A stretch of DNA of 64,000 nucleotides from Tubulanus polymorphus (taxonomy: Eukaryota; Animalia; Nemertea), in assembly GCF_964204645.1 (NCBI RefSeq), contig NC_134035.1, positions 9,952,451 through 10,016,450 of the forward strand. The letters are read 5' to 3'. Shown piece after piece: positions 5,266 through 44,632 of this stretch. Below the pieces are notes generated by a model. The model was not told the origin of the DNA and ran no database searches. It saw only the letters and a list, made by a program, of their open reading frames with translations. Position numbers and translations under genes: made by a program. Positions within the stretch are counted from its first letter, which is position 1. Each line of letters starts with the position of its first letter.

Positions 5266-7628
5266 ATGAGCTCCTCGAAGAAACGAGTTTGCGTCATCGG
5301 CGCTGGACCTTCTGGAATGAGTTTTCTGTGCCATTTGGAGAAACCTCGTCTTGAAGGAGTCGATGTACCCGATGTAGTTTGCATTGAGAAACAAAGTAAC
5401 TGGGGTGGATTGTGGAACACTACCACTTGGAGAACAGGTCGGTGAATTATCTTGATGATGAATTATAATATTGTTCAACAGAATGCATGAATTAACACAA
5501 TGACTGGAGGTATGATCTATCTATCAGGTCTCGATGAGAACGGTGAAAACGTCCACAGTCCGATGTACAAGCAGCTTATCACAAACAGCCCAAAAGAAGT
5601 TTCGTGTGAATTTCACGATTACTCATTCGAAGAACATTTCGGTAAACCAGTTCCATCATTCGTACCCAGGGAATTAATGTTCGACTATTTGAACGGTAAG
5701 AAGATATTGCAGATATTCGGCTTGTTTTCCAATTATACAGCCTAACTATCAGAATAGAATAGTCAGCTGATTAGCTTCTGGGTTTATTACGTCAACTGAT
5801 TTTCCAATTAATACCTATTGGTTTTCATTAAGTCACTAATTAGATGCAGTTCTTTTCAATAAAATTCAAGTACATCCTATTTATCTTTGTGTACATTAAA
5901 TATATGAAATACATTTTGTATGAATTATTTATATATGGACCTTCATGATATGAAGCAAATAGATAAATGAATCAATACATTACAGAACTTTCTATTGTAG
6001 GTCGATGGAGCATGAAAAACGTGCGTCGTTTCATCAAATTTGAAACAGTTGCTCACACGGTTACATACAATCCGAACTCAGATGATTTTACGGTTGTGAT
6101 GAGAGATGTGTCCAATGATTTATTGTTACCCGCTCAAACATTCGACTTCGTCATCAACGCCACCGGTCATTTTTCATATCCAAATATACCTCATTACGAA
6201 GGATTCGAAACTTTCCCTGGTAAAGCTATACCATTGTTTGCTTACTTCAATTTCTTCAGTTATATACTAGAGATTTACCCATCCTCTAGGCGAATAGTGG
6301 TATCAATACACGAGAAATTGAAGCAAATGAAGCTGTGATAACGAGGATTGGCACTGTCTACTAAACGCTTGTTACAACATCGCATTGGGTAGTCTTACAA
6401 CCGACTCATGTGCGGCAGCGAACCCAAAGCTTTAAAAATCATTTCTACCAAACAAAGCTTAGATGCCGTTCAAACCTACAATTGGACCATTCAGAGTTTC
6501 AACGTTAAATGTTTTGAGTCGCTTGTAAAGTATATCCGCGGTGGCACCGGCGACCAATAAATGTTTTCAGTGTATATATGTTGTACATTGCAGCGACAAC
6601 TCACCTGCGTTTCACCATATTTTCATTAGGTCGCATTATACACACAGTTGAAATGCGTGATATGACACACTTCAAGGACCAAAACGTCCTCATAGTCGGA
6701 AACAGTCGATCGGCTGTTGACACTTCTCTGCAGTTGTACAAGTACGGAGCAAACAGTATTATCATTTCCTATCGTCATTACAAAAAAGATCTGATATTGC
6801 CTGAAAATATTACTACAAGACCAATTCGGACTAAAGTCGTCGGGAAAACTGTTCATTTCAAAGATGGAACAACCGCTGATGTAGGTGTTATGTCTAACTG
6901 TCTCGATGCGAGTTATAATGTATGATTCTCAAAATCTAAATGCATTCGATCCTGGCTAAATTCATTTTCTTGTAGGTCGACACGATTATTCTAGCAACTG
7001 GGTACAAACACCACTACCCTTATATGGATAATGATCTGAAATTAAAAAGCGCAAATCTGTATTATCCTGATAATTTGTACAAGGGTATTTTGTGGATGAA
7101 AAGTGCCAATAATAGGCTGTTCTATATCGGTGCCCAAGATCAGATGTACACATTTACGATGTTCGACGCCCAAGCATTGTGGGCTCTACGAGTTATCATT
7201 GGCGACGTCAAATTACCTTCACGCGAAGCCATGCAAGCGGACATTAAATATTGGCGAGACAGGTTAATTTATCGCTGCATCTTCTGATATTTGAATGATT
7301 AGTTTTTGGATGATAATGTTTTTTCCTTGGTTTGTTATGTTGCAGAATGGAAGCGGGATTGTCACCGCCGAACTGTACATTTTACAGCATTCTCGAGTTC
7401 CAAACGGAATACACACTTGATGTAGCAGATGAAGCTAAATACGGCTATAATCTGGACGGCAGGGGAATTATGTTGAAATATCTACCACATTTGCTAGAAA
7501 AGCCATTCACTGACTCGAAGGACTTTCAGGCCCGTAGCAATGTAACTGGGAGAATAGCACCTCCACATCACACTCATTTCTTACAGAACTTCGATCTATC
7601 ATTGCAATCATACCTTAATTCTAAATAA
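5266..7628 (+). CDS. Flavin-containing monooxygenase, bacterial trimethylamine monooxygenase (Tmm/mFMO)-like, copy 1, 459 aa
   Basis: Exons 5266-5437, 5528-5695, 6001-6219, 6630-6880, 6976-7262, 7346-7628 give 1380 nt, all GT-AG and in phase. Motifs: GAGPSG FAD site, [30 protein letters not shown] fingerprint, [20 protein letters not shown]. Confidence 0.95.
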
Positions 7629-8097
7629 CAAAATGTACGTACGTATCTAAAAATAGTGAGAGTTACCCTTCTTTTCAGTATGAATGAATTAGTTTTTATG
7701 TAGTAGAAGTAGATTACGGTTAGTGGATATTTCTCGTTGCTGTATCGTGGTCTGTAAGTAAATCCTTTTCAGTTTAATCATCGCGTTTTTCATATTTCAT
7801 AAGTTATGATATAATGGACGCTGCGCGTCGGCGAATGGTGTAGAAACAGACATGAATTTACGGCTAATAAACAAACGATGAAGTCGAGTTTACAGTGTCA
7901 ACCGGCGACGATACCAGTCTGATAAATCCTTGATCTATGAAATTGGTCCGAAATGAAAAAATGTACAAACTGATAAAAAAGTAGATGAATACTATATAAC
8001 GCAGTACAAGGATCGCAATCTATCGCATACCCCTGAGAGATGCGATTCACAATCGACTGTATTTCAACGGTTAATCATTTGAATCGATTCTATTTAG

Positions 8098-8374
8098 ATG
8101 TCCCGCCTTCGCAATGGACATGGACCATCCGTGTAACGTCGCAGCAACACTTAAGAAAAACCAGAAGAATCACTGTCACATGGTCGACTCGTTCATCATC
8201 AAAGAATCTTACCAATCGTGTTGTCAACCGCAGGTCGTCTGCAAGAAAAGCGGCAAATACAGAAACTATTTCGACGAGAAATCGTACGGAAAAGATAGTT
8301 CGAGATTGGAATGTGCCAAGCGGAATTCACATCCATGTCAAAAAAGCACAAGAAACACGACTAGTCGTGGTTGA
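8098..8374 (+). pseudogene. Orphan duplicate of exon 3 of the secreted Cys-rich gene, with a net 10-nt deletion (frameshift) near the 3' end
   Basis: Homology to 3974-4800 starts at about 8024. The acceptor TTCTATTTAG is intact. No copies of exons 1-2 lie upstream. Confidence 0.75.
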
Positions 8375-9012
8375 AATATAAGCGTTAAATCGTCAGTTTT
8401 GCAACTTTCGATTGAAATTCAAATCTAATTTTGTCATCGTTGTTCAATCATTTATTATAATATTCGTTCCGTTACATTAGGAGAGAGGGTGGTAAGAATA
8501 GAATAGCGCCTTGATAACCGATAAATAGACTAATAGATACATAAGTACGGCTGTACAAACACTCTTTGCCTACAGACAGATTTCTGCAAAGTTCGTTTGT
8601 TACTTTGCGTGTCTTATGAAACTGATGCCGATCGTTTAAAGCTAGTTTTACCATTTTTGCCTGATTTCCACAACAAATGATTGAACGAGTAACAGTTGAT
8701 TTCGTGCAGTCTGCACAGATTGGGACTCCTCCGATAATTTCCAAAACGGTAAGACATTTGTATGAAATTACCTTACACACTTTCCATACAAAATTGTAGA
8801 TTCGGCCTCGCAATCATGAATGCGATAACCTACATTTGCTTGTTCCTATAAGTGTTGATATGAGTACAAGAACTAGTTTTTATCGAGGCTTAGATCACGA
8901 ATCCTATCACGAATAATATCTACGGCTATTCGCGCTTCAATCCAATGCGTGTTCATCATAGAGTTCTTTTGAATCGGTTTCCATCCTTTAGAGACAGTCC
9001 TTTTGCAGTATT

Positions 9013-11125
9013 ATGAGCTCCTCGAAGAAACGAGTTTGCGTCATCGGCGCTGGACCTTCTGGAATGAGTTTTCTGTGTCATTTGGAGAAACTTCGTCGTC
9101 TTGAAGGAGTCGATGTACCCGATGTAGTTTGCATTGAGAAACAAAGTAACTGGGGTGGATTGTGGAACACTACCACTTGGAGAACAGGTCCGTGAATTAT
9201 CTTTTCGATATCCTTTTTGGTCGAATACGTACCTCTTACATAGAGGAACTAGTTCTAAAATATTGCAGAGTCTCCTTCCATATTTGAGAGCAGGAAGTTG
9301 TCCCCTGATTATTGTTTAATTCAGATAAAATAACCTGAGTGACTTGCGTAAACTATTTTATCGATCTGCTTTTTATCAGGTCTTGATGAGAATGGTGAAA
9401 ATGTCCACAGTCCGATGTACAAACAGCTTATAACAAACATTCCGAAAGAATGTACATGTGAATTCCATGATTATTCATTTGAAGGACATTTCGGTAAACC
9501 AGTTCCATCATTCGTACCCAGGGAATTGATGTTCGACTATTTGAACGGTGAGAAAATGGTTGAATATCGGTTTACCATCTAAGTATAATCAGTTGATAAT
9601 CTACTTCGTGAATAGTCTGAAAGAAAATGAAAGATTGGAAGCAAATTCACTGGTAAAAATTACCGATAGGATTGGATTAGTTAAAAAAGAATCGGGACCG
9701 ACTTTTCTGAAAATAAATATCTTTATATCGCGTTTCCTTCTCAAAAAAGTATTTTCCTATAAGAAAATTGTTCAATATTATACTGTAGATTATACGTGAG
9801 TATGTCTATAATGTATATATGTTTAATTGTAGGTCGATGGAGCATGAAAAACGTGCGTCGTTTCATTAAATTTGAAACGGTAGCTCACACGGTTACATAC
9901 AATCCGAACTCAGATGATTTTACGGTTGTGATGAGAGATGTGTCCAATGATTTATTGTTACGCGTTCAAACATTTGATTTCGTCATCAACGCGACCGGTC
10001 ATTATTCATATCCAAATATACCTCATTACGAAGGATTTGAAACTTTCCCTGGTAAAGCTACCATTATTCGCTTACTTCAATTATTTCAGTTGTTTGAAGC
10101 GATACCTGCTGAGAGATGATTTTTATCGTCTTTTTATTAGGTCGTATTCTACACACAGTTGAAATGCGTGATATGACACACTTTAAAGGCCAAAACGTCC
10201 TTATTATTGGAGGCAGTGCATCGGCAGATGACACTTCTCTGCAGCTGCACAAGTACGGAGCGAATAGTATCATCATTTCCTATCGTCATTACAAACAAGA
10301 ACTGATAGTACCTGAAAATATTACTACAAAACCTATTCTGACTAAAGTCATTGGGAAAACTGTTCATTTCAAAGATGGAACGACCGCTGATGTAGGTGTG
10401 ATGTCTAACTCTCTCGAGTTATAATGTATGATTCTGTCAATCTAAATGTATTCAATATAGACTAAATTCCTTTTCAGGTCGACACGATCATTCTAGCAAC
10501 TGGCTACAAACACCATTACCCTTATATGGACAACGATCTGAAATTGAAAAGCGCAAATCTGTTTTATCCTGATAATTTGTACAAGGGTATTTTGTGGATG
10601 AAAAGTGCCAATAATAGGCTGTTCTATATCGGTGCCCAAGATCAGATGTACACATTTACGATGTTCGACGCCCAAGCTTTGTGGGCTCTACGAGTTATCA
10701 GTGGTGACGTCAAATTACCTTCACGCGAAGCCATGCAAGCGGACATTAAACATTGGCGAGATAGGTAAATTTTCGGTGCATCTACGATTTGAATGATTAG
10801 TTTTGGATGACAACGTTTTTTCCTCGGTTTGTTATATTGCAGAATGGAAGCGGAATTGTCACCGCCGAAATGTTCATTATACAACGTCCTTGAATTCCAA
10901 ACGGAATATATACTTGATGTAGCAGATGAAGCTAAATACGGCTATAATCTGGACGGCCGAGAAATGTTATTGAAATATCTACCACATTTGCTAGAAAAGC
11001 CATACACTGACTCGAAGGACTTCCAGGCCCGTAGTATTGTAACTGGGAAAATAACACCCCCCCATCACACTCATTTCTTACAGAACTTCGACCTATCGTT
11101 GCAATCATACCTCAATTCTAAATAA
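9013..11125 (+). CDS. Tmm/mFMO-like flavin monooxygenase, copy 2, 460 aa
   Basis: Exons 9013-9187, 9380-9547, 9833-10051, 10141-10391, 10478-10764, 10843-11125. One extra Arg codon in exon 1. Reading frame intact. Confidence 0.95.
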
Positions 11126-12214
11126 CAAAAACATCCAGAAATACATAGTCGGAGTGACCCTTCTTAGTATCGATCGGTTAGATTTTATCGCGAAGTAGAT
11201 TACATGATGAAATATGATCGATATTATCATTTACAAATAAATTATTCAGTTTATCTCTTGCGTTTCTCATATTCAATGCGTTGTGACATAATGGATGCTG
11301 CTTAGAAATAGTTAGAGTTACTTCTTTTCAGTATGGATGAATTCGTTTTTTATGTAGAAGTAGATTACGGGTTGTTAGTTGATATTTTTTGTTACTGTAT
11401 CGTGGTCTGTAAATAGATCATATTCAGTTATTTCATGCATTTTTCATATTTCATCATAAGTCATAAATTAAATATAATGGATGCTGCTGCTTGTTGGTGA
11501 ATGAGAAACAGACACGAATTTATGGCTAATAAACAAACGATGATGTCGAGTTTATTGCGTCTACCGGTGACGATACAAGTAAGATAAGTTCTTGATCTAT
11601 GAAATTGCACCGAAATAAAATAATGTACATACTGATAAAACGTAGATAAATACTATATAGGGCAGTGCAAGGATTGGAATCTATCTAAAAAATTGGCATG
11701 TAATAAAACCAGACAGATTTCCTCGAAGCTCAATTCACGCATTCTATGGTGAGGGCAGTACTATTCTTTCGAAATTGATATAAATCAACTTTTTGTCAAC
11801 CTATTTTTGCTCATTTTATGCCTAGTTTATATGACATAATATAGCACCGAATCGTGTTCGTGCAGTCTACAGGAGATCTCTGATACTTTCCAAACGGTAA
11901 GAGAATTGAAGCAAGCTTACTTTAATTTTTCAGTAAAAATTAAACTTTGTATATGTGAACCCAATTTTGACCGAAGGCCTTTTTTCAATTGGAGTACGGA
12001 CCTTTGGAGAAAAAAATGGAGAAGGGAATGAATTGAAAAATCTGAAGAAAAAAAATCCTATTGTAGGTTTTGAAATTGGAAGGGAAAAAGGGGAAAATAA
12101 GGAGATTTTTTTCCTGCTTTCGAGGTTTTCGTGCTTCAATCCATTACGTGTTCGTCAAAGGGTTCTTTTGAATCGTATGTTTCCATTCTATAGAGACAGT
12201 CGTATTACAGTAAT

Positions 12215-14361
12215 ATGAGCTCCTCGAAGAAACGAGTTTGCGTCATCGGCGCTGGACCTTCTGGAATGTGTTTTCTGTGTCAATTGGAGAAACTTCGTCT
12301 TGAAGGAGTCGATGTACCCGATGTAGTTTGCATTGAGAAACAAAGTAACTGGGGTGGATTGTGGAACTCTACCACTTGGAGAACAGGTCGGTGAATTATC
12401 GTTTTCATATCCTCTATTGGTCGAATACCTTATTGTTTATCTGTTTCATCATACATCCGACCTGTGGAACTCTGACCTGATTGAGAATCATTTGAATTCC
12501 CCTTCATCTGTAACGTGTCTAAACTAATTCAGGTCTCGATGAGAACGGCGAAAATGTCCACAGTCCGATGTACAAGCAGCTTGTTGCAAACAGCCCGAAA
12601 GAACTTTCGTTTGAGTTCCATGATTATTCTTTTGAAGAACATTTTGGTAAACCAGTTCCATCGTTTCTACCCAGAGAAGTAGTCTTCGACTATTTGAACG
12701 GTAAGAAACTGGTTGAAATTAGGTTTAGCACCTAAGTATAATCAGTTGATTAACTTCTGGGTTGCTGATGATTTACTCCGTGAATTGAATACAAGAAAAT
12801 GAAAGATTTTAGGAAAATTCACCGCTTAAAGTAACTGATAGGATTGAATTAGTTAAAAAAGAATCGGGTCGAACGTAACTGGAAATAAAAGAGTTAGCGT
12901 AATCTTAATTTGAGGTGTCCTGGGAATACAATTCAAAAGGTTTGGGCGACTTTGTTACGAATGTCCTTCTCACAAAAAAAAGTAATTTCCTATTAGAAAA
13001 TTGTTCAATATTATACTGTAGATTACACGTGAATATGTCTATAATGTATGTATATTTAATTGTAGGTCGATGGAACATGAAAAACGTGCGTCGTTTCATT
13101 AAATTTGAAACGGTAGCTCACACAGTTACATACAATCCGAACTCAGATGATTTTACGGTTGTGATGAGAGATGTGTCCATTGATTTATTGTTACCCGCTC
13201 AAACATTTGATTTCGTCATCAACGCCACCGGTCATTATTCATATCCAAATATACCTCATTACGAAGGATTCGAAACTTTCCCTGGTAAAGCTATACCATT
13301 GCTTCAATTATTTCAGTTGTTTGAAGCGACACCTGCTTAAAGATGTTTCATTATTTTTCTATTAGGTCGAATTCTGCATACAGTTGAAATGCGTGATATG
13401 ACACACTTTAAAGACCAAAACGTTCTTATTATTGGGGGTAATTTCTCAGCAGATGATACTTCTCTGCAGTTGTACAAGTACGGAGCGAAAGATATCATCA
13501 TATCCTATCGTCATTACAAACTAGAACTGATAGTACCTGAAAATATTACTACGAAACCTATTCCGACTAAAGTCGTCGGGAAAACTGTTCATTTCAAAGA
13601 TGGAACAACCGCTGATGTAGGTGTAATGTCTAACTGTCTCGATGCGAGTTATAATGTATGATTCTGTTAATCTAAATGTATTCAATATTGACTAAATTGG
13701 TTTTCTTATAGGTCGACACGATTATTCTAGCAACTGGGTACAAACACCATTACCCTTATATGGATAATGATCTCAAATTGAAAAGCGCGAATCTGTTTTA
13801 TCCTGATAATTTATACAAGGGTATTTTGTGGATGAAAAGTGCCAATAATAGGCTGTTCTATATCGGCGCTCAAGATATTCTGTATTCGTTTACGATGTTC
13901 GACGCCCAAGCTTTGTGGGCTCTACGAGTTATAATTGGTGACGTCAAATTACCTTCACGCGAAGCCATGCAAGCGGATATTAAACATTGGCGAGATAGGT
14001 AAATTTTCAGTGAATCTTCTAAGATTTAAATGTTTAGTTTTTGGACGATACTAATTTTCTTGGGCTCATATATTGCAGAATGGAAGCGGAATTGTCACCG
14101 CCGAAGCGTTCATTTTACAGCATTCTCGAGTTCCAAACGGAATACACACTTGATGTAGCAGATGAAGCTAAATACGGCTATAATCTGGACGGCCGAGAAA
14201 TGATGTTGGAATATCTACCACATTTTCTAGAAAAGCCATACACGGGCTCGAAAGACTTCCAGGCCCGTAGTATCGTAACTGGGAAAATAGCACCCCTGCA
14301 TCACACCGATTTCCTACAGAACTACGACCTATCGTTGCAATCATACCTCAATTCTAAATAA
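12215..14361 (+). CDS. Tmm/mFMO-like flavin monooxygenase, copy 3, 459 aa
   Basis: Exons 12215-12386, 12533-12700, 13066-13284, 13366-13616, 13712-13998, 14079-14361. Exon lengths are the same as in copy 1. Confidence 0.95.
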
Positions 14362-15527
14362 CAAAAATGTCAAGAAATAGTTGAAGTTGCCCTTCTTTTG
14401 ACAATGGATGAATTCGTCTTTATGTAGAAGTAGAAGTAGATTACGGTTAGCGAAATTCTCTCGTACTGTACGATGGTCGTTGCTATCCTTTAGAAAAAAA
14501 TACTAATGTATAATGTCATTACATGTATTCAGTTTATTAATTGAATTTACCATATTTCATAAGTTATGATATAATGGATGACACTGCTTGTTGATGAATG
14601 ATGTAAAAACAGACATGAATTTACGGATAATTAACAAACGATGATATCGAGTTTGATAGTGTCAGCCGGCGGTGATCTCAGTCTGTTTAATCCTTAAACC
14701 ATGACACGGGGCTAACATAGAATAATGTACATTCCGATAAAAAGTAGATAAATACAATATACGGCATATGTATATATCATATATATACAAATATCGGAAT
14801 CTCTTTATCTGACATATTGGCTTATAATAAAACAAGACAGATTTCCTCGAAGCTCAGTTCACGCATTTCATTTTCGCTGTTCCATTGAAATTGATATTGA
14901 ATCAACTTTTGTCCACCTATTTGTGCTATTTTTATGCCTGATATTGAAGAAGTAACTCGTATTCGTGCAATCTACACTGGATCTTCTCTGTGATACTTTC
15001 CAAACGGTAAGACGATTGAAGTATGCTTATATTGAACATTCTGTAGAAATCAAACTTTATGTTAATTGAAGTGGGAGAAGGCCTTTTTTGCATTGGAGTA
15101 TGGACCTTTCGAAAAAAAGGATAAGGGATTTAACTTAAAAGTTCAAAGAAATTCCTACTGTACGGTTTTAAATGGAAGGGAACGACGGAAAAATGGAAAG
15201 GATTATTTTTGTGCGCGTATTTTCGATAAGTATTAGATAAATAAAGGAGTAAACCTTCTGTTGGATTGAATTCAAATGATAAGAGAAATTAAGAAAACTA
15301 ACTTGTTGCTAATAGTTATATCGGAAATTTAAACAAAAACACAACGAACAAATTTTCGTGAAAATCTATCCAATTAACCTACATAAGCTGAAAACAGTAG
15401 CTCGGTTCAAGGCCTAGTTCATGGATAATTAGGACAGCTATTCGCGCTTCGATCCAATGCGTGTTCATCATAGAGTTCTCTTGAATCGTATGTTTCCATC
15501 CTATAGAGACAGTCCTATTACAGTAAT

Positions 15528-17846
15528 ATGAGCTCCTCGAAGAAACGAGTTTGCGTCATCGGCGCTGGACCTTCTGGAATGAGTTTTCTGTGTCATTTGG
15601 AGAAACTTCGTCTTGAAGGAGTTGATGTACCCGATGTAGTTTGCATTGAGAAACAAAGTAACTGGGGTGGATTGTGGAACACTACCACTTGGAGAACAGG
15701 TCGGTGAATTATCTTTTCATATCCTCTAATGGTCGAACCCCTCATCAAGAGGAACCAATTCCATAATTTAATGGGTGTCTTCGTCCTTAATTAACGCTTA
15801 CTTTATCGACAAACTTAAGTTCATAGTGTTGACATTCAAGAGCGGTATATCGAACCTTTTCCACAGTTTTCACAAATCCACAGTAGGATTTGACCTAAAT
15901 TTGAACTTAAGTGAAATCAAACCATACAATATACAACTGGTTCCATGGTGAATGATTCAATCTGAGATAAATCATTGATTAAATGAACTGTCTGACTCGA
16001 AATATAATATCTATCCGTCTATTTCATCATACCTTCGACCAATGGAACTATGGCTTGATGATTATCCAGTTGAAAATCAACGAATTGCTCTTCATTTGTA
16101 TCACGTTTCCACTCAGGTCTCGATGAGAACGGTGAAAATGTCCACAGTCCGATGTACAAACAGCTTGTTGCAAACAGCCCGAAAGAACTTTCGTTTGAAT
16201 TCCACGATTATTCTTTTGAAGAACATTTCGGTAAACCAGTTCCATCATTTCTACCTAGGGACGCAATCTTTGACTATTTGAACGGTAAGGAAATCCAGTT
16301 TTACACCAACTTAGCATACCTATTAATTCTGGTTATTAATAATTTACTTCGTGAATTATACACGAGAAAATTCCGCTGGTAAAAATTACCGATAGGTTTG
16401 GATTTAATGAGAAAATCGGGACATTCGCATAATAGAAATTTTGAAGTGGCCGGGGCATATTGAGTTGAAAAGTTCCGCCAACTTTGTTGCGTATTTCCTT
16501 CTCACAAAAAAGTAATTTCCTATCAGTTTGTTGTTCAATATAATGTCTTTAATTGTAGGTCGATGGAACATGAAAAGCGTGCGTCGTTTCATTAAATTCG
16601 AAACGGTAGCTCACACAGTTACATACAATCCGAACTCAGATGATTTTACGGTTGTGATGAGAGATGTGTCCAATGATTTATTGTTACCCGTTCAAACATT
16701 TGATTTCGTCATCAACGCCACCGGTCATTTTTCATATCCAAATATACCTCATTACGAAGGATTCGAAACTTTTCCTGGTAAAGCTATACCATTGATTCCA
16801 TGCTTCAATTATTTCAGTTGTTTGAAGCGATTCCTGCTTAAAGATGGTTTCTATCGTCTTCATATTAGGTCGAATTCTGCATACTGTTGAAATGCGTGAT
16901 ATGACACACCTTAAAGACCAAAACGTCCTCATTGTCGGAGGCAATCTGTCGGCAGATGACACTTCTCTGCAGCTGCACAAGTACGGAGCGAGCAGTATCA
17001 TCATTTCCTATCGTCATTACAAACAAGAACTGATAGTGCCTGAAAATATTACTACAAGACCTATTCTGACTAAAGTCGTCGGGAAAACTGTTCATTTCAA
17101 AGATGGAACAACCGCTGATGTAGGTGTTATGTCTAACTCTCTCCATGCGAGTTAGGTTTCTGCCAATCTAAATGTATTCAATATAGACTAAATTCATTTT
17201 CAGGTCGACACGATTATTCTAGCAACTGGCTACAAACACCATTACCCTTATATGGATAATGATCTAAAATTGAAAAGCGCGAATCTGTTTTATCCTGATA
17301 ATCTATACAAGGGAACTTTGTGGATGAAAAGTGCCAATAATAGGCTGTTCTATATCGGTGCTCAAGATCAGCTGTACTCATTTACGATGTTTGACGCCCA
17401 AGCTTTGTGGGCTCTACGAGTTATCATTGGCGACATCAAATTACCTACACGCGAAGCCATGCAAGCGGACATTAAACATTGGCGAGATAGGTAAATTTTC
17501 GGTGCATTTTCTAAGATTTGAGTGAATAAGTTTTGGATGATAATATGTTTCCTTGTATTGCAGAATGGAAGCGGAATTGTCACCGCCGAAGTGTACATTT
17601 TACAGCGTCCTTGAATTCCAAACGGAATATATACTCGACATTGCAGATGAAGCTAAATACGGCTATAATCTGGACGGCAGGGGAATTATGTTGAAATATC
17701 TACCACATTTTCTAGAAAAGCCATACACGGGCTCGAAAGACTACCAGGCTCGTAGCAATGTTACTGGGAAAATAGCACCTCCACATCACACTGATTTCTT
17801 ACAGAACTTCGATCTATCGTTACAATCATACCTCAATTCTAGATAA
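15528..17846 (+). CDS. Tmm/mFMO-like flavin monooxygenase, copy 4, 459 aa
   Basis: Exons 15528-15699, 16117-16284, 16559-16777, 16869-17119, 17204-17490, 17564-17846. Confidence 0.95.
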
Positions 17847-18073
17847 CACAATTATTAAGAAATAGTTGGAGTTACCCTTCTTTTCAATATGGATTACCTC
17901 GTTTCTATGTACAAGTACATTACGGTTAGAGAATATTTCTCGTACTGTACCATGGTTGTTATTATTATTTAGAATAAATACAAACACATTATAGATCATA
18001 TTCAGTTTATCATTGCATTTTTTCATATTACATGAGTTGTTATATTTTAGTGCGATGATATTTTGAGTAAATC

Positions 18074-18297
18074 ACTGCGTGACCTGGAAATCCAATAGCA
18101 CAACAAGAATGAATCGTAGGCCTAAGTTGTAGATTTAGTTTATCAGGTGAAAACCACCGAAGACAAACTGACTCATCTAGGCCTAAGCTGGACCTTGACG
18201 ACTCTAGTTCCACCTATAAATCCAGCTAGGAGAATGTGATTGGAGGATCCAGGCGCACTAGGGCTCTGACAAGGGAAGCGATGATGACGATGATGAT
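18074..18297 (+). mobile_element. Degenerate 3' end of an RTE/L2-type non-LTR retrotransposon
   Basis: Broken reading-frame fragments TWK..RRPK..KTTEDKLTHLGLSW resemble the RTE ORF C-terminus (WxP..GRPK..W....GLxW). A (GAT)n tail follows. Confidence 0.45.
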
Positions 18298-18533
18298 ATA
18301 TATATATGAGGAATTTTAACATTTTGAACCAAATAATTCTTCGGATTTACGCAGGGAGTTTAGTGTTATGATTATCGCTAGTTGATGATCGATATAAATT
18401 TTAATGATGTAAGAAATATTTCTACCGGGGAAAATGAGGATCATATTTAACGAGAGGAGATCTCTTTCCGATTTAATGAGGAATAATATTCATAACTACT
18501 GCAGCAGTTTTCAGACGTCACTCACAGTTAGAG

Positions 18534-19613
18534 ATGAACGCGACTTTCAGTGTGAATTGGACCGCAGTCGCTACGACAACCATCAAAGGATTCAGACCGC
18601 ATTCTAGATGCAAATTCATCCATCATTCCGACTACAAACCGTTTAACTTGAACCTGTTTTACCAGATCAAGAACTGGGTCGTCGCTAGCGTCGCTGTGTT
18701 CGGCGTTATCGGAAACATTTTGTCGTTCGTGATTCTGCGCAAGGAAAAACGGAAAAATACGAGTATTTTTTATCTGAAATATCTGGCTATTCTTGACGTG
18801 TGTATGTGTGCGTCTTATCTTGTATTTGATTTCCAGAATGAATTGTACAGTCACACGTTATTACTCGACCATACCTTACAATTCAACCACTTTATGAAGA
18901 GACTCTACCCGTACACGCAACAAGTAAGGTTCCGTTTTTCTGGTGTGGCTGATTTGTTAATTCTGGTGATTGCTGTGGACAGATTGATCGTAGTTCGGTG
19001 GCCTCTGAAAGCCAGCACACTGATTTCAATGAAACGAGCTTGTATCAATGTAGTAGCTATAACTTTATTTATTGCCTTGATGTCGGTGCAGTCGTTTTTT
19101 CTTAAATGGACTCGTAGGTCTATCAATCCGTGCACTGGACACGAAAGATGGGCAATGAAGATAACTGCTTTCAGTAAAAACACTTACTATCGTTATTACA
19201 TGTTATTCGTTTATGCACCAATTTTTCATATAATTCCATCCGTCACCATTTTCATTATTACCATAAATATAATTGTAATTCTGAAATGTACAAGATTAGC
19301 CAGAGAACACATTACGTCATCAACAGTTCCTTCTAGGAATAAACACGATCGAAGTTTGACGATTTCTTTAGTTATTATTTGCTATATACATTTGATAAAA
19401 CGCTCTCTACTTTTGTCCGGTGCGATTAACAACTTCTTAGTGTTTATATACGGCAAGAACGTTCTGCTGTTACCCGATACTGGGCCTTATTTGGACGGCG
19501 TAAAAGACTTGATGAGGAAAATTTCAGCATCCGCGAATTTATTTATTTATGTCGCGATGAGAAAAAGTTTTCGTCACCGACTTCGCGAAATGTTTTGTAA
19601 TCAGAAGAAATGA
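18534..19613 (+). CDS. Class A (rhodopsin-type) GPCR, FMRFamide/sex-peptide-receptor-like or chemoreceptor-like, 359 aa, intronless
   Basis: Seven hydrophobic segments. N-terminal N-glycosylation sequons NAT and NWT. GN in TM1, LAILD in TM2, DRL..VRWPLK after TM3, ANLFIY..RKSFR at TM7/helix 8. Confidence 0.9.
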   Translation: MNATFSVNWTAVATTTIKGFRPHSRCKFIHHSDYKPFNLNLFYQIKNWVVASVAVFGVIGNILSFVILRKEKRKNTSIFYLKYLAILDVCMCASYLVFDFQNELYSHTLLLDHTLQFNHFMKRLYPYTQQVRFRFSGVADLLILVIAVDRLIVVRWPLKASTLISMKRACINVVAITLFIALMSVQSFFLKWTRRSINPCTGHERWAMKITAFSKNTYYRYYMLFVYAPIFHIIPSVTIFIITINIIVILKCTRLAREHITSSTVPSRNKHDRSLTISLVIICYIHLIKRSLLLSGAINNFLVFIYGKNVLLLPDTGPYLDGVKDLMRKISASANLFIYVAMRKSFRHRLREMFCNQKK

Positions 19614-20427
19614 CAGCAATTAGCGGAAATACTGAAAATGCTTCATTACTTAGAGAGTTACTGGGGGGTGGCGTGCTGGAATAGCAACCCTGAAACTCAG
19701 TGACCAGCTGGGGGAGCCAATTGAGTCAGAGAAAGGTCAATTTTCAAAAGAAAAAGCTCAAATTAGTTGGATCTAATGGGAACAAAGGTTTTGCACGAAG
19801 ATCGTCAATCGCTCTATTCATTCTCATCAGGAAGATGAGTCTGCTTGATGTGACAGGAAAATCGACAGTGTTTAAAAGTAGTAGCTGGAAATGCAGATGT
19901 GACCTGCATCACTATTCAAGAGTAGTTACTATTCTTTTAAGAGCTCAGTTACGACCAATGTTATCAACATGCTCACGAAGTCAGGGTCATTTCTAGTTAA
20001 TTTTCAATTCAGCTTCGATTTTCGATGTCTCAATGTGGTGAAAACTAAACACATAAATTTGCGTAGTTGCATAAATTTGTGCAGTGAATTGCAGAGGAAA
20101 CGTGAAGCCTTAATGGTCGTTTATAAAAAAACTATAGCAATCAGAATATCTATACTATAAGCGGCTAGGCGTCTTAACTTTGTAACGCGTAATTTCTGTT
20201 TGTGTGGCTTCGATTACGCGTTGAGTGGTATGAATTGAAAGAGGTTGGTCTGATCTGTGTTTTAGGATCGATTTCGTGCCGATACGATAAAGTTTAGGTA
20301 CACTTTTGGACCATTTAAGTTTGGACGCTCCGCGTAACGTCACTGCGCGCGCTGATCGAAACAAACATTTGAGCGTCGGTTTTTGTATAGTGTGCTTGAC
20401 TACAGAGACGCGGGTGACCTCAATTCT

Positions 20428-21532
<1,105 letters not shown>

Positions 21533-22104
21533 CGGTAATACCCGAAATTCAGTTCACGCATTTTATGGTGACGGCAGTGCTATTCTTCTGAAATTGATAT
21601 AAATCCACCTTTTTCCCAACCTATGTTCACTTCCTTTTATGCCTGGCTGGTTTATATGACACAATAGCAGTACTGACTCGTATTCGTGCAGTCTACACAA
21701 TCTTCTCTGATACTTTCCAAACGGTAAGAGGATTGAAGCAATCATACCTAAAATATTCAGTATAGATTGAACTATATATATTCAAATAACATTAGTGAAG
21801 GCGGCGAAGGCCTATAACTTGCAGTGCGGGAAGCAGAATCCGTACACTAACCATTTGAAAATGGGCTTTCGGTTGGTTTGCAGTGAATGCGATATGTTCA
21901 ATTAACCTACATAAGCTTGTTCTTTTAAGTGTTGATATCATACATTTTATATATACGCTACAAGAACTGTTGCTCGTTTCAAGGCCTAAGGGCACGAATA
22001 ATTGCTACGGCTATTCGTGCTTCAATCCATTGCATGTTCATCATAATAGGGTAATTTTAAAATCGTATGTTTCCATCCTTTAGAGACAGTCGTATTACAG
22101 TAAT

Positions 22105-24849
22105 ATGAGCTCCTCGAAGAAACGAGTTTGCGTCATCGGCGCTGGACCTTCTGGAATGAGTTTTCTGTGTCATTTGGAGAAACTTCGTCTAGAAGGAGTC
22201 GATGTACCCGATGTAGTTTGCATTGAGAAACAAAGTAACTGGGGTGGATTGTGGAACACTACCACTTGGAGAACAGGCCGGTGAATTATCTTATATCCTT
22301 GATTGGTCGAATCCCTTCTCAAGAAGAATCAAATGACATATTTTGAGGGGGTCTCCATCCTTAGACTTAAAATTCTAACTACTACTTTATTGACAAAATC
22401 AAATTCGCAGTGATGACAATCAAGTGCGGTGTAATGAACCTCTTCAAAAGTTTTGAGTAAGATTTGACGTAATTAAGCAAAGTAAAATGGAAACAGGAAA
22501 TATAGAGCTGGCCCTTAATGGATGATTGACACTGGTGGTAAATCACATCCTCCCACGGCAGGGATTCGAACCTAATGACATCGCTACACCCAGCCACGGC
22601 ACAAACCCCTGCCACAGTAGACCGGGTGCGCAGGTACATACCCAGTTTTGCTGCTCGAAAACGTGCGGCACCAATCAGTTTGCTCGTTGTATAATCGCCG
22701 AGGTAAATTTTACGGAAGAACTATGAATAGGAAAACCCGGGCTAAAATAAAACGGGATTATCTGATTGGCTGATAATGACATCTAAGTCTAAGCTGCGCG
22801 TGTAGCTTAGCTGCGCACTCGGTCTAGTGTGGCAGGGTTTCGTCCCGTGGCAATCTTGATGCCATCAGGTTCGAATCCCAGCCGGGGGAGGATGGGTAAA
22901 TCATTGATTAAATCAATTTCGTCATACATCCGACCTGAAATAGGACTCAATTATCCAATTGAAAATCAACAAAATTCCCTTCACCTGTATCATGGTTCGA
23001 CTTATCCAGGTCTCGATGAGAACGGTGAAAATGTCCACAGTCCGATGTACAAGCAACTGATAACAAACAGCCCGAAAGAACTTTCAGTTGAATTCCGGGA
23101 TTATTCTTTTGAAGAACATTTTGGTAAACCAGTTCCATCGTTGGTACCCAGGGAATTAATCTTCGACTATTTGAACGGTAAGAAACTGGTTGAAATTAGG
23201 TTTGAAACCATCCGAGCATACCTGTATCATCAGTTGATTAACTTCTGGGTTGCTGTTGATTTACTCCGTGAATTATACACGCGAAAATGAAACATTGTCA
23301 GATAATTCGTAGCAAAAACTACCGATATAATTGGATTAGTTAAAAATGAATCGGATCTGACTTATCTGTGAATAAAAGAGTTAGCATAATCTTAATTTGA
23401 GGTGTCCTGGGCATAAAATTTATAAGGTTTGGGCAACTTTGTTGCGAGTGTCCTTCTCACAAAAAAAATGTCCTAGTGTGTAGAAAAGTGTTCAATATTA
23501 TACTGTTGATTAAACGTGAATATGTCCATAATGTATTGTAATGCAATGTCTGCAATTGTAGTTCGATGGAACATGAAAAATGTGCGTCGATTCATCAAAT
23601 TTGAAACGGTAGTTCACACAGTTACATACAATCCGAACTCAGATGATTTTACGGTTGTGATGAGAGATGTGTCCAATGATTTGTTGTTACCCGCTCAAAC
23701 ATTTGATTTCGTCATCAACGCCACCGGTCATTATTCATATCCAAATATACCTCATTACGAAGGATTCGAAACTTTCCCTGGTAAAGCTACCATTGCTTCA
23801 ATTATTTCAGTTGTTTGAAGCGACACCTGCTTAAAGATGTTTCATTATCTTCCTGTTAGGTCGAATTCTACATACAGTTGAAATGCGTGATATGACACAC
23901 TTTAAAGACCAAAACGTCCTTATTATCGGAGGCAGTCTCTCGGCAGATGACACTTCTCTGCAGTTGTACAAGCACGGAGCGAAAAATATCATCATTTCCT
24001 ATCGTCATTACAAACAAGAACTGATAGTACCTGAAAATATTACTACAAGACCTATTCTGACTAAAGTCGTCGGGAAGACTGTTCATTTCAAAGATGGAAC
24101 AACCGCTGATGTAGGTGTATTGTCTAACTCTCTCGATGCGAGTTATAATGTATGATTCTGTCAATCTAAATGTATTCAATATAGACTAAATTCGTTTTAT
24201 TATAGGTCGACACGATCATTCTAGCAACTGGGTACAAACACCACTACCCTTATATGGATAATGATCTGAAATTGAAAAGCGCAAATCTGTTTTATCCTGA
24301 TAATTTGTACAAAGGAACTTTGTGGATGAAAAGTGCCAATAATAGGCTGTTCTATATCGGCGCTCATGATCAGATGTATTCATTTACGATGTTCGACGCC
24401 CAAGCTTTGTGGGCTCTACGAGTTATAATTGGCGACGTCAAATTACCTTCACGCGAAGCCATGCAAGCGGACATTAAACATTGGCGAGATAGGTAAATTT
24501 TCGCTGCAATTTGAACGATTATTTGTTTGGATGAATATATGTTTTCCTTGATCTATTATATTGCAGAATGGAAGCGGAATTGTCACCGCCGAAGTGTACA
24601 TTATTCAACATTCTCGAATTCCAAACAGAATACATACTCGACGTAGCAGATGAGGCTAAATACGGTTATAATCTGGACGGCAGGGGAATTATGTCAGAAT
24701 ATCTACATCATGTACTTGAAAACCCATTCACAGAGTCGAAAGACTTTCAGGCCCGTAGCAATGTAACTGGGAACATAGCACCTCCACATCACACTCATTT
24801 CTTACAAAACTTTGACCTATCGTTGCAATCATACCTCAATTCTAAATAG
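22105..24849 (+). CDS. Tmm/mFMO-like flavin monooxygenase, copy 5, 459 aa; intron 1 has a GC donor
   Basis: Exons 22105-22276, 23010-23177, 23562-23780, 23860-24110, 24206-24492, 24567-24849. The donor reads AG|GCCGGT where other copies have AG|GTCG/CGT. Otherwise the frame is open. Confidence 0.85.
22546..22894. mobile_element. 349-bp MITE with ~85-bp imperfect TIRs and a 9-bp TSD (GGTAAATCA), Mutator-like
   Basis: TSD at 22537-22545 and 22895-22903. Ends CATCCTCCC...GGGGAGGATG are inverted. The element is absent at the homologous intron position of copies 4 and 6. Confidence 0.85.
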
Positions 24850-26562
24850 CAAAACAAAATAATATCTAGAAATAGTTGGAGTTACTCTTCTTTTCAGTAT
24901 CGATAAATTAGGTTATATCTAGAAGTAGATTACTGTTAGTGGATATTTTTAGTTTCTGTACGGTCGGTATTATTATTTACAAATAGATCAGTTTATTATA
25001 TTTATTGCGTTTCTCATATTTCATTAGTAATTATATAATGGATACTGCTTCTTGGTGAATGACGTAGAAACGGACACGAATTTATGCGGCTAAACAAAAT
25101 ATGACGTCGAGTTTAATAGTCAACTGGCGGCGATCGCAGTCTGATAAATCCTTAAACTATTACACTGGGCTAAAAAAAGATAATGTACATTCTGTTAAAA
25201 AAAATAGATTAATACAATATATGGCAGTTTTACACAAAGATTTGACTCTCATTATCTGACCTATTCGCTTAAAATAAAACAGATTTCCTCGAAGCTTGGT
25301 TCACGCATTTTTCGGTGTAGGTAGTGCTATTCTTTTGAAATTGATATAAATCAACTTTGAGTCAACATATTTTTGACCTTTTCTACGCCTGTTTCATGCG
25401 ACACATATAGTAGCAGTGACTCGCGTTCGTCCAGTATACACAGTGGATCTTCTCTGATCATTTTCAAACGGTAAGAGGATTGCAGAGCGCATACATGTAC
25501 TTAGATTATTCAGTAGAAAAAGGGGGAAAAATTAAAAGGATTTTATTTTACTATTCGAGAGTTTTTCACATAAAAAATCTTAGATAATAAAAAGGGTGAA
25601 CATTGGATTTAATTCAAATTAAAAGAAAAACGTAGAAATATAACTTGTTGCTAATAATTAAACGAATGAAAATTGAAACGATAATATCAAGACAATAAAA
25701 AATATGATGAAAACGCGACAGAAGACTAAAAAACCCTTTTGTTTTATATTATGTATTTGGTAGAATTCAGTGGAAGTTTGAATCGTGCTCCGAATATTGA
25801 AAAAGGGCCTTGATTTGGTGTGCAGTGAATGCGATATAATCAATTAACCTACATAAGCTTGTTCTTATAAGTTTTGATTCTATTTAAAGTGTAAGTTTAG
25901 GTTTATTGAGACTTGAACTGAAACAGTACAAGGAATGTAGCTTGTATCAAGGCCTAGGCCACCGATAATGGGGTACCGGCACACACCAGATGGCGTCATT
26001 TCAATCAGTTATACGTACTGACAATTTATCTCATTTTCGATTAATTTTGAACTGGTCTTTAAAGCTCCCAAATAGCCGTCAAACAAGTCATCAAATAGAT
26101 ATAAGATTGATGTTCCGAAAGAGTGTCTGGTATAGTTTTACTGGAAATTGATTTCGGTATGGTCGATAACTTTTCTGATGAAAGCAACATATTATTGTGT
26201 TAGCCGAAACATGTCGACATTATTTTTTTATGTATGTAAATATAACAGAAAAAGGGTCTAAAATGTTCGCCTGGGCGTTTGTTTTAATTATTGACACTCA
26301 AGACTTTTTCATTACCGGAAATTAAGGTTGATTCGAACTTAAAAATTGAAATGTAGAAGCAATTGAAGCGCAGTAAACGAGTAACCACTAGCGAGCCTGG
26401 CGGATCATCGCCTGCCATATACGGGGAATCCTCGATTGCCACAGTAGCGGTGCCGGTATTCCATTAATACAGCAATTCGTGCTTCAATCCATTGCGTGTT
26501 CGTCAAAGGGTTCTTTTGAATCGTATGTTTCCATCCTATAGAGACAGTCGTATTACAGTAAT

Positions 26563-28744
26563 ATGAGCTCCTCGAAGAAACGAGTTTGCGTCATCGGCGC
26601 TGGACCTTCTGGAATGAGTTTTCTTTGCCATTTGGAGAAACTTCGTCTTGAAGGAGTCGATGTACCCGATGTAGTTTGCATTGAGAAACAAAGTAACTGG
26701 GGTGGATTGTGGAACACTACCACTTGGAGAACAGGTCGGTGAATTATCTTTTCGATATCCTTCATTGGTCGAATGAATCCCTCATCAGGAGATACCGTTC
26801 TACAATATCGTGCCATCACCTTCCTTAAACCATAACTTTAATTCAAACATTATTGATTGACAAATCCTAGTTCACAATGTTGAAAATCATGAGCGGTATA
26901 GCGAACCTCTTCAAATGTTTTGCATAAGATTTGACATGATTGAACTAGTGTAAAATCAAACCATTGAATATATGAAATAAACCATATAATATACAACTGG
27001 CATTTAATGAATGATTGACTCTAGTGTTAAATCCATGATTAAATGAAATGTTTGACTCAAAATAAAAAATGTCTGTATATTTTCATCATAATTTCCGACC
27101 AGTAGATCGACCACCTGATTATGCAATTGAGAATCAACAAATTCCCCTGTATCTGTATCATGTTTAAACTAATTCAGGTCTCGATGAGAACGGTGAAAGT
27201 GTTCAGAGTCCGATGTACAAACAGCTTATAACAAACAGCCCGAAAGAACTTTCGTGTGAATTCCACGATTATTCATTTGAAGAACATTTCGGTAAACCAG
27301 TTCCATCATTCGTGCCCAGGGAATTAATGTTCGACTATTTGAACGGTAAGAAACCGGTTGCTTTACAATCTTACTATACCTGTGTCAGTTGATTGACTTC
27401 TGGGTGAACGTGAATATGTCTATAATATTGTATGTTTAATAATTGTAGGTCGATGGAGCATGAAAAACGTGCGTCGTTTCATCAAATTTGAAACGGTAGC
27501 TCACACGGTTACATACAATCCGAACTCAGATGATTTTACGGTTGTGATGAGAGATGTGTCCAATGATTTATTGTTACCCGCTCAAACATTTGACTTCGTC
27601 ATCAACGCCACCGGTCATTTTTCATATCCAAATATACCTCATTACGAAGGATTCGAAACTTTCCCTGGTAAGCCTACCATTGTTTGTTTGCTTTAATCAT
27701 TTCAGTTGTTTGAAGCGACACCTGCTAAAAGATGTTTCATTATCTTCCTATTAGGTCGAATTCTGCATACAGTTGAAATGCGTGATATGACACACTTTAA
27801 AGACCAAAACGTCCTTATTATCGGAGGCAATCTCTCAGCAGATGACACTTCACTGCAGTTGTACAAGTACGGAGCGAAAAATATCATCATTTCCTATCGT
27901 CATTACAAACAAGAACTGATAGTACCTGAAAATATTACTACAAAACCTATTCTGACTAAAGTCGTCGGGAAAACTGTTCATTTCAAAGATGGAACAACCG
28001 CTGATGTAGGTGTAATGTATAGCTTTCTCGATATGAGTTATGATTCTGCCAATTTAAAATTCAATTTTAGCTAAATTCATTTTCTTATTAGGTCGAAACG
28101 ATTATTCTAGCAACTGGGTACAAACACCATTACCCTTTTATGGATAATGATCTCAAATTGAAAAGCGCGAATCTGTTTTATCCTGATAATTTGTACAAGG
28201 GTATTTTGTGGATGAAAAGTGCCAACAATAGGCTGTTCTATATCGGCGCTCAAGATCTGATGTACTCATTTACGATGTTCGACGCCCAAGCTTTGTGGGC
28301 TCTTCGAGTTATCATTGGTGACGTCAAATTACCTTCACGCGAAGCCATGCAAGCGGATATTAAACATTGGCGAGATAGGTAAATTCTCGGTCCTTCTTTC
28401 AAAAAGATTTGAAAGATTACTTTTTGATAATTCTCTTCTGCCTTGGTCTAATATATTGCAGAATGGAAGCGGAGTTGACACCGCCGAAGTGTACATTTTA
28501 CAGCGTCCTTGAATTCCAAACGGAATATATACTCGACGTAGCAGATGAAGCTAAATACGGCTATGATCTGGACGGCAGGGGAATCATGCTGAAATATCTA
28601 CCTCATATACTTGAAAAGTCATACACGGGCTCGAAAGACTTCCAGGCCCGTAGCAATGTAACTGGGAAAATAGCACCTCCACATCACACTCATTTTTTAC
28701 AGAACTTCGATCTATCGTTGCAATCATACCTCCATTCTAAATAA
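26563..28744 (+). CDS. Tmm/mFMO-like flavin monooxygenase, copy 6, 459 aa
   Basis: Exons 26563-26734, 27178-27345, 27449-27667, 27755-28005, 28092-28378, 28462-28744. Confidence 0.95.
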
Positions 28745-35441: not shown

Positions 35442-39366
<3,925 letters not shown>

Positions 39367-44098: not shown

Positions 44099-44632
44099 TC
44101 AACTAGATACGAAAGCTGCCAACTGTCGGATGTTGATATTATGATGATGGTGGTCAGAGCTATTGTAGAACTGTTGATTACAGGATCTGGAAGTTGTGGT
44201 ATTTGATGCGCTCGTTTGATTTCGGTTCGTTTTCTCCGCTACCGGAGCCGTTTCGTTGCCGTTCTTCTTGTCCAGTTCGTCCTCACCCGAATACAACACG
44301 CCAATGCTTCCATCTTCACCAATTCGATACGATACCTCTTTAGGGTCGACCCAAATCGTCAGCTCGTTCGGTAAATTGTTCAGAAAGTTTACGCCGAGCC
44401 CGCTCTCGTCTGCGGCTCGCTTCAGAAGCGGTTCGACGCTATGATTAATACGAATACATCTATAACCACTACCTCTAAATGGACGTTCTGGAAACCAATG
44501 ATTTTGATACCTCTCGGTTAGAATTCTCTGTAGACATCTATCGAAATTGTCGACATCGACCAGTTCTCCTCTGCTACAGCGTTTCAGCAAATTACAGAGA
44601 AATCCAGTCGCAGCATTTATTTCTTTGTTCAT
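44099..44632 (-). CDS. BTG: BTG/Tob family antiproliferative protein, 177 aa
   Basis: EI.AA..FL N-terminus; box A YQNHWFPERPFRGSGYRCIRIN; box B LPNELTIWVDPKEVSYRIGEDG; Kozak context ACCACCATG. Confidence 0.95.
   Translation of the reverse strand: MNKEINAATGFLCNLLKRCSRGELVDVDNFDRCLQRILTERYQNHWFPERPFRGSGYRCIRINHSVEPLLKRAADESGLGVNFLNNLPNELTIWVDPKEVSYRIGEDGSIGVLYSGEDELDKKNGNETAPVAEKTNRNQTSASNTTTSRSCNQQFYNSSDHHHHNINIRQLAAFVSS

Follow-up and report, generated by a model that had tools for sequence, protein, structure and literature searches.

Six flavin-containing monooxygenase (FMO) genes lie in tandem between positions 5266 and 28744 of a 64,000-nucleotide (nt) stretch of the genome of the palaeonemertean Tubulanus polymorphus (NC_134035.1, positions 9,952,451 to 10,016,450 of the forward strand), which we call the window. 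Their products are class B FMOs of clade II and of the mFMO/Tmm structural type, as judged by Pfam, sequence, fold and catalytic residues, and they differ from one another at the lining of the substrate cavity more often than chance would predict. Among the databases searched the array was found in T. polymorphus only, and it is a real subfamily of FMOs, specific to this lineage, whose cavity has been remodelled and diversified. On balance, we lean towards an account in which the array descends from a canonical Tmm-like gene, the cavity was rebuilt on the stem and the gene then multiplied, and the copies oxygenate small nucleophiles other than trimethylamine with differing preferences. The novelty lies in a subfamily of animal FMOs derived from Tmm, in which the nicotinamide/substrate cradle has been remodelled in a unique way, the cavity comes in six variants and gene conversion has made the copies mosaics.

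Gene models, family and fold

Search of the window by tblastn with the exon peptides of copy 1 led to six FMO genes on the + strand, each with six exons, spanning 5266-28744, and to no further exon sets in the rest of it. The initial annotation had claimed a six-copy array at 5528-28378; the count agrees and the full extent is slightly wider. In splice-aware models all six reading frames are open over 1380-1383 nt and encode proteins of 459 amino acids (aa), or 460 aa for copy 2. The splice junctions keep the same codon phase across the six copies, with AG acceptors throughout and GT donors in 29 of the 30 introns.

Copy 1 (459 aa) is located at 5266-7628 (exons 5266-5437, 5528-5695, 6001-6219, 6630-6880, 6976-7262 and 7346-7628) and has GT-AG borders at all five introns, while copy 2 (460 aa) is located at 9013-11125 (exons 9013-9187, 9380-9547, 9833-10051, 10141-10391, 10478-10764 and 10843-11125) and carries one additional Arg following residue 27. 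RefSeq XP_074660596 (P0151) joins both copies (5266-11125) into one 920-aa protein: its first half agrees residue for residue with positions 1-453 of copy 1, and its residues 461-920 with the whole of copy 2. The fusion looks like an annotation artefact, because there is no GT at the implied copy-1 junction (after ...TTGCAA, ~7609). In five of the six copies an in-frame stop is found 21 nt upstream of the ATG, together with a near-identical upstream frame of 7 residues. In copy 2 this stop is a TAG at 8989-8991 in an acceptor-like context (tttag/AGACAG), which is where the RefSeq join falls. The acceptor-like upstream TAG suggests an intron in the 5' untranslated region and an undetected non-coding first exon for each gene.

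Copy 3 (459 aa; 12215-14361; exons 12215-12386, 12533-12700, 13066-13284, 13366-13616, 13712-13998 and 14079-14361) and copy 4 (459 aa; 15528-17846; exons 15528-15699, 16117-16284, 16559-16777, 16869-17119, 17204-17490 and 17564-17846) match RefSeq XP_074660366 (P0153) and XP_074660925 (P0001) exactly. Copy 5 (459 aa if its GC donor is used; 22105-24849; exons 22105-22276, 23010-23177, 23562-23780, 23860-24110, 24206-24492 and 24567-24849) has a GC donor at its first intron (22276/22277), which reads G/GCCGG and not G/GTCGG. Since the normal donor is GC instead of GT, RefSeq XP_074660742 (P0152, 445 aa) takes a cryptic in-frame GT donor at 22234/22235, 42 nt upstream, and thereby loses 14 residues, the W-G-G-L-W segment among them. 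Intron 1 of copy 5 is long (733 nt against 90-443 nt in the other copies) because it contains a high-copy repeat at ~22500-22900, where the summed contig word depth is 18,000-55,000 against 10-200 around. Another high-copy repeat is found at ~26300-26500, upstream of copy 6 (word depth ~2,300 against 10-200 around), and both show many repeat-type joints. Finally, copy 6 (459 aa) is located at 26563-28744 (exons 26563-26734, 27178-27345, 27449-27667, 27755-28005, 28092-28378 and 28462-28744). The RefSeq entry (P0154) is restricted to the C-terminal 262 aa and agrees fully with residues 198-459 of our model, in which exons 1-3 are intact with GT-AG introns.

Concerning family membership, the Pfam FMO-like family (PF00743) was matched with 137 bits against a cutoff of 22. 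A phmmer search of the PDB matched mFMO over residues 6-458 (E = 3.9e-126), and every exon alone matches the same chains. The AlphaFold2 model of copy 4, built from a 99-sequence alignment, reached a predicted local distance difference test (pLDDT) score of 92.7. In Foldseek it superposed on 2XVE, 2VQ7 and 8B2D with a template modelling (TM) score of 0.93-0.96, a root mean square deviation of 1.5-1.8 Å and 44% identity, against TM scores of 0.6-0.7 for mammalian-type FMOs. The predicted model has the paired-Rossmann fold, the short NADP-domain insertion and the large C-terminal helical domain. The flavin adenine dinucleotide (FAD) motif G-A-G-P-S-G is invariant in the six copies, the second nucleotide-binding loop reads G-(N/G)-(S/N)-x-S-A in all of them (GxSxSA in mFMO), and the catalytic and cofactor residues W47, N73, H185, S208, R229, Y274, N291 and D317 do not vary (residues are numbered here and below after mFMO, 2XVE).

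A rebuilt cradle and a variable cavity

Apart from the six copies, search of the whole genome (268 Mb, 77 contigs) gave one relative on contig 1 and one distant FMO on contig 4. The relative, P0155 (RefSeq, 450 aa), is a canonical Tmm-like paralog located on the - strand at ~7003190-7005330. It is at most 51% identical to the array, has all five intron positions in common with it and keeps the bacterial-type cavity (W71, G74, C78, Y207, Y319, F397 and W400). A tree of 44 sequences recovers the array as a clade (SH-aLRT 100) with P0155 as its sister (95), and the two fall among the animal Tmm-like proteins of cnidarians, scallops and copepods, apart from the bacterial clade. At 0.70 substitutions per site, the stem of the array is about three times as long as that of P0155 (0.25). 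Relative-rate tests with the three nearest outgroups counted 89-98 unique changes in the array against 35-44 (p from 1.5e-5 to 5e-7); the effect was weaker with scallop and bacterial outgroups (p = 0.03 to 0.0009) and nonsignificant with Exaiptasia.

The changes on this stem reach deeply conserved positions. The family has 135 columns conserved at 90% or more; all six copies have lost the family residue in 26 of them, of which P0155 retains 24, and the array residues at 71, 187, 188, 189, 237, 400, 404 and 438 are shared by none of the 97 homologs in the 99-sequence alignment. The signature of the functional Tmm cradle (W71, Y207, Y/W319, F397, W400 and R412) is absent, as every member is replaced in all copies: W71 by I/V, Y207 by R/A/F/L, Y/W319 by M/L, F397 by M/L, W400 by Y and R412 by K. 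P0155 retains this signature. Further array-wide replacements are H187V, D188E and F189M, and D438 is replaced as well. The equivalents of W71 and R412 hydrogen-bond the nicotinamide of NADP+ (PMC8498191), so the loss of the cradle residues means that in the array the meeting point of NADP+ and substrate has been rebuilt. For the same reason the label "trimethylamine monooxygenase-like", which RefSeq gives to the T. polymorphus entries matching copies 3 and 4, is not readable as a function. An exon-5 search of 1.84 billion representatives gave only one cluster above E = 1e-30 for array-type relatives elsewhere, and a full-length protein search gave no relatives between 51% and 100% identity.

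The six copies differ in amino acid at 89 of 460 aligned columns. The initial annotation proposed that these differences gather at substrate-pocket positions and quoted five sets of short peptide strings, all of which we reproduced exactly in the six copies. It had equated them with mFMO Asn73-Cys78, Phe165, Tyr207 and Asp317-Trp319, and exon-wise phmmer alignment to 2XVE and 8B2D together with the 44-sequence family alignment gave the same correspondence. For Phe397 and Trp400 the register is off by one between the pairwise and the family alignment; either way 397 varies (in one copy) and 400 is invariant. Using residue lists that others had fixed in print, we found variation above chance in both hypergeometric and within-exon permutation tests. 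Five of the seven cavity residues in Table 1 of PMC6940849 vary (hypergeometric p = 0.0037; within-exon permutation p = 0.009), as do four of the seven tunnel residues S205, S206, Y274, N291, D317, Q318 and W319 of PMC10991670 (within-exon p = 0.01) and 11 of the 21 pocket, tunnel and loop residues of the two papers combined (p = 5e-4; within-exon 6.5e-4). The members of these lists that never vary are W47, M66, N73, S208, Y274, N291 and D317, and R229 is likewise constant. Invariant catalytic and cofactor sites beside a varying cavity form the pattern expected if the chemistry is kept and the cavity shape changed.

Four segments, all on the + strand, were located in each of the six copies. 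The loop after the catalytic Asn73 (mFMO 71-81 plus one insert after 78) lies at 5578-5613 in copy 1, with equivalents at 9430-9465, 12583-12618, 16167-16202, 23060-23095 and 27228-27263; residues 71, 72, 74, 78, the insert and 79 vary in it, while N73, P75, K76 and E77 are invariant. The NADPH-motif or gate loop (mFMO 204-210; 6698-6718 in copy 1, equivalents 10209-10229, 13434-13454, 16937-16957, 23928-23948 and 27823-27843) holds the Tyr207 equivalent as the fourth residue of G-x-x-x-S-A, which is R/A/F/L/L/L in copies 1-6. The gatekeeper loop (mFMO 315-321; 7132-7152 in copy 1, equivalents 10634-10654, 13868-13888, 17360-17380, 24362-24382 and 28248-28268) contains Q-D-x-x-Y-x, mFMO 316-321, in which 316, 318, 319 and 321 vary and D317 does not. 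Facing it is the C-terminal helix (mFMO ~394-404; 7461-7493 in copy 1, equivalents 10958-10990, 14194-14226, 17679-17711, 24682-24714 and 28577-28609), where 7 of 11 columns vary, with an alignment register uncertain by one residue. In TGH(F/Y)S the variable residue is the equivalent of Phe165.

At mFMO 74/78/79/165/207/318/319 the residues are S/V/C/F/R/Q/M in copy 1, I/C/C/Y/A/Q/M in copy 2, S/L/F/Y/F/I/L in copy 3, S/L/F/F/L/Q/L in copy 4, S/L/V/Y/L/Q/M in copy 5 and S/L/C/F/L/L/M in copy 6. The six copies thus carry six distinct cavity combinations, and even the closest pair in each exon still differs at 78, 165, 206, 207, 223, 318 or 319. On the alignment to mFMO, the differences appear to lie on both sides of the contact between gatekeeper loop and helix and around the tunnel mouth. 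In mFMO, Y207 keeps the nicotinamide in position and makes up the bottleneck of the tunnel (PMC6940849, PMC10991670). W319 (W324 by the numbering of 2VQ7) belongs to the gatekeeper loop, where it acts as the "blockade" residue of clade II, and this loop lies on the long C-terminal helix (PMC10682829). Cys78, Tyr207 and Trp319 were correctly named in the initial annotation as engineering targets, and substitutions at 78, 207 and 319 alter the kinetics and enantioselectivity of mFMO (PMC6940849, PMC11313838). The varied pockets fit the idea of an enzyme set that may be tuned to different small molecules; as candidates the initial annotation proposed amine, sulfur, indole or alkaloid substrates, with a putative role in detoxification or in making pigments or toxins.

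Gene conversion, selection and competing explanations

The copies are mosaics produced by frequent and uneven gene conversion. The 81 informative sites back 25 different splits among the six copies, of 2556 informative pairs of sites 1572 do not pass the four-gamete test (PHI-like permutation p = 0.0002), and the segment trees conflict, pairing copies 3 and 4 in exons 1-3, copies 3 and 6 in exons 4-5 and copies 2 and 3 in exon 6. Mean synonymous divergence (dS) is 0.04 in exon 1, 0.12 in exon 3, 0.35 in exon 6 and 0.44 in exon 2, and the copies diverge by 6-9% in coding DNA, 14-34% in introns and 34-42% in flanks. With conversion so frequent and uneven, tree-based site tests have to be read with care.

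Pairwise ratios of nonsynonymous to synonymous rates (dN/dS) of 0.15-0.22 among the six copies, at a dS of 0.17-0.29, indicate purifying selection overall, and the private changes are mostly synonymous (low nonsynonymous to synonymous, N/S, counts) in every copy, copy 5 included. Codon models were fitted with our own Goldman-Yang likelihood, unbenchmarked against PAML, on one tree, three segment trees or six exon trees. M1a was far better than M0, with ~80-85% of sites at an omega of 0.05-0.1 and 15-20% at an omega of 1. The seven a priori cavity codons have an omega of 1.0-1.25 (support 0.6-2.0) against 0.2 elsewhere, with twice the log-likelihood difference (2dlnL) at 17.6-19.1 and the synonymous rate fixed from the whole alignment. 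Replacements are five to six times more frequent in the cavity than elsewhere, and a tree-free count of minimum changes gave an N:S of 8:1 at cavity codons versus 96:128 elsewhere (Fisher p = 0.0075). The strongest single-site signal, and the only codon nominally above an omega of 1, is the Tyr207 equivalent (omega ~7, 2dlnL 8.6 versus omega = 1; nominal p ~0.003, ~0.02 corrected for seven candidate sites).

Taken together with the gene structures, the family and fold, the site pattern, the conversion and the long stem branch, all of which the analysis shows, this rate heterogeneity leads to the account that we favour. A canonical Tmm-like ancestor, surviving as a single copy on another chromosome, would have founded the array; on the stem branch the aromatic W71, Y207, Y/W319, F397 and W400 would have been swapped for smaller aliphatic residues, and the gene would have multiplied after this rebuilding. 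The copies would hold their catalytic machinery under purifying selection, each with its own cavity, tunnel and gate lining, while gene conversion would reshuffle segments among them. As soluble FAD- and NADPH-dependent enzymes they would pass from NADPH-reduced flavin to the C4a-hydroperoxyflavin and so N- or S-oxygenate soft nucleophiles; C4a-hydroperoxide chemistry is expected because the fold, the FAD and NADPH motifs, Asn73, Asp317 and Arg229 are retained. The cavity is predicted to have more room and a more aliphatic lining than that of Tmm, and to differ from copy to copy. The preference for trimethylamine would be lost, and the copies would differ by degrees in substrate size, affinity and stereoselectivity, as is seen for the C78, Y207 and W319 mutants of mFMO (PMC6940849, PMC11313838). 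Enzymatic activity, differing substrate scopes and selection rather than drift behind the differences would thus belong to the proposal.

Several results weigh against this account. Comparison of M1a with M2a reveals no class with an omega above 1 (likelihood-ratio statistics 0.01, 0.35 and 0.0 in the one-, three- and six-tree schemes), and M7 against M8, the check named in the initial annotation, is nonsignificant too (0.53, 1.79 and 1.62), both on six sequences and a tree ~0.76 per codon in length, at which the power of site models is low. The cavity omega rejects the background rate, not an omega of 1, and the same value is expected from unconstrained drift. The claim that selection had produced the pocket variants is therefore not supported by these tests, strict positive selection at the cavity is not demonstrated, and adaptive diversification, though plausible, is inseparable here from relaxed constraint. 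As to the enzymes themselves, the FMO-identifying motif FxGxxxHxxx(Y/F) reads F-P-G-R-I-(I/L)-H-T-V-E-M in the array. F, G and H are kept, and the final residue is Met in all six copies, compared with Phe or Tyr in 93 of 97 homologs; in view of the fold and the Pfam score, we take this as a deviation inside the family and not as a reason to exclude the array from it. Loss of W71, Y207 and R412 along with the Met-ending motif could weaken NADP+ retention, raise uncoupling or even impair oxygenase activity, and Asn at mFMO 207 leads to high hydrogen-peroxide formation (PMC6940849). The GC donor of copy 5 may mean that its full-length product is possibly not made. A search for transcripts gave none: the only two public runs with this DNA show no splice joints at exon borders, and they are DNA because introns and intergenic spacers are covered alike. 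Finally, the 90% cluster of the array proteins contains RefSeq entries only.

Relaxed constraint is one competing explanation: a trimethylamine-type function lost on the stem, cavity sites drifting neutrally, and redundant copies kept for dosage or awaiting loss. We regard this as possible but doubtful. A cavity omega statistically indistinguishable from 1 (0.6-2.0), an M1a as good as M2a with 15-20% of sites in the neutral class, and the many variable surface sites of exon 6 outside the cavity are all in line with it. Neutral drift agrees less well with replacements that are confined to few and mostly hydrophobic residues (copy 1, with Arg at 207, is the exception) and do not run through all residue types, with at least four states in six copies at the Tyr207 site (2dlnL 8.6 versus omega = 1), with fully conserved catalytic residues next to the variable ones, and with copies that are all open at an omega of ~0.2 despite a dS of up to 0.44.

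Uneven conversion might by itself let differences accumulate in unconverted exons that happen to hold the loops, and the range of per-exon mean dS (0.04 to 0.44), the discordant exon topologies and the four-gamete failures (1572/2556 pairs) would be its trace. We think this improbable, as the enrichment holds under within-exon permutation (p = 0.009; 6.5e-4) and the omega contrast holds with per-exon trees and branch lengths (2dlnL 19.0), so that conversion explains the exon-level pattern and not the site-level one. Decaying pseudogenes or assembly duplicates are more improbable still. The mutated donor and the intron-1 repeat of copy 5, together with a RefSeq annotation that is partial for copy 6 and fuses copies 1 and 2, may point that way; against them stand six open frames, GT at 29 of 30 donors, AG at every acceptor and a dN/dS of ~0.2, and independent DNA contigs that cover the region. 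The divergence of 6-9% in coding DNA and 14-34% in introns excludes assembly duplicates, and since the frames are also intact and dN/dS is low, we rejected the reading. A more speculative extension of the favoured account, which we consider unlikely, is a tubulanid-specific battery for handling chemicals: a Tmm-type enzyme minus its trimethylamine cage, whose cavity variants would oxygenate small molecules of defence or diet, or pigments, and in this way activate, store or neutralise them, with conversion shuffling loop cassettes and selection keeping the loops different.

Neighbourhood and comparison with known systems

The array is split between copies 4 and 5 by a single-exon open reading frame (ORF) for a G protein-coupled receptor (18534-19613, + strand, 359 aa; Pfam Srw-type chemoreceptor 9.8e-12, rhodopsin family 4e-11). 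The same spacer contains a long TA-rich microsatellite at ~21350-21560 and two similar short ORF-bearing segments (20466-20656 and 21078-21215), which look like a local duplication. Downstream of the array we identified a BTG-family domain at 44102-44632 (- strand, 3.7e-37), a piece of a tubulin GTPase domain at 36510-37013 (- strand, 3e-08) and, at 31489-32169 (+ strand), a weak CD20-like match that stays under the Pfam cutoff. No biosynthetic or detoxification gene cluster was found in the window, the neighbours being the chemoreceptor-type receptor, the BTG gene and the tubulin fragment.

Soluble FMOs of the Tmm/mFMO type are structurally the best understood FMOs and are used as biocatalysts, and to our knowledge their roles in animals are essentially unstudied. 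Diversification at substrate-contact sites is familiar in tandem detoxification genes. Six natural near variants, with P0155 as a canonical control in the same genome, form a panel for finding which cavity residues set specificity, and the array offers a test system for the consequence of removing the conserved nicotinamide cradle (W71, Y207 and R412). It also points to unexplored small-molecule metabolism in a chemically defended nemertean. If the copies are redundant, they would be a case of neutral drift at a disused pocket that resembles a designed library.

Compared with bacterial mFMO (Methylophaga) and Tmm (Roseovarius, Pelagibacter HTCC7211, Myroides; PDB 2XVE, 2VQ7, 8B2D, 5GSN, 7D4K and 6KBW), the array proteins have the same length, domain order and fold at 41-44% identity, and keep the FAD GxGxxG motif, the NADPH G-x-x-x-S-A loop, Asn73, His185, Ser208, Arg229, Asn291 and Asp317. 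They differ in their replaced cradle residues, the residue inserted after 78, five introns and a eukaryotic, six-copy setting. The canonical animal Tmm-like FMOs (P0155 and its cnidarian, scallop and copepod homologs) belong to the same tree clade, but unlike the array they keep the bacterial-type cavity. Scallops have many paralogs, and in one scallop member of this animal family, P0169 (Argopecten irradians isoform X2), the 207 site is likewise Leu, independently of the array; parallel cavity remodelling may have occurred in other FMO expansions of marine invertebrates.

In the insect pyrrolizidine-alkaloid N-oxygenases and other clade II FMOs, lineage-specific duplicates have been recruited to new small-molecule substrates (PMC3282741, PMC2862711, PMC10682829). 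Zonocerus PNO (PDB 5NMW), Tyria SNO and plant GS-OX follow the same logic of duplication and then recruitment that is proposed for the array. The insect N-oxygenases are only 26-27% identical to the array (TM 0.72-0.77) and have known substrates, whereas the array comes from the Tmm-like branch and not from the insect branch. A further parallel to the copies is engineered mFMO (C78I/V/L, Y207W, W319A/F, S206N, Q318L, K223R and D317S), as the paralogs vary naturally at the same positions and some engineered substitutions, with effects measured in mFMO, are natural in them, namely Val or Leu at 78, Asn at 206 and Leu at 318 (PMC6940849, PMC10991670, PMC11313838). In engineered mFMO the changes are made in an otherwise wild-type protein whose cavity is aromatic, whereas the paralogs combine them on an already remodelled one, so the effects seen in the former are not transferable one to one.

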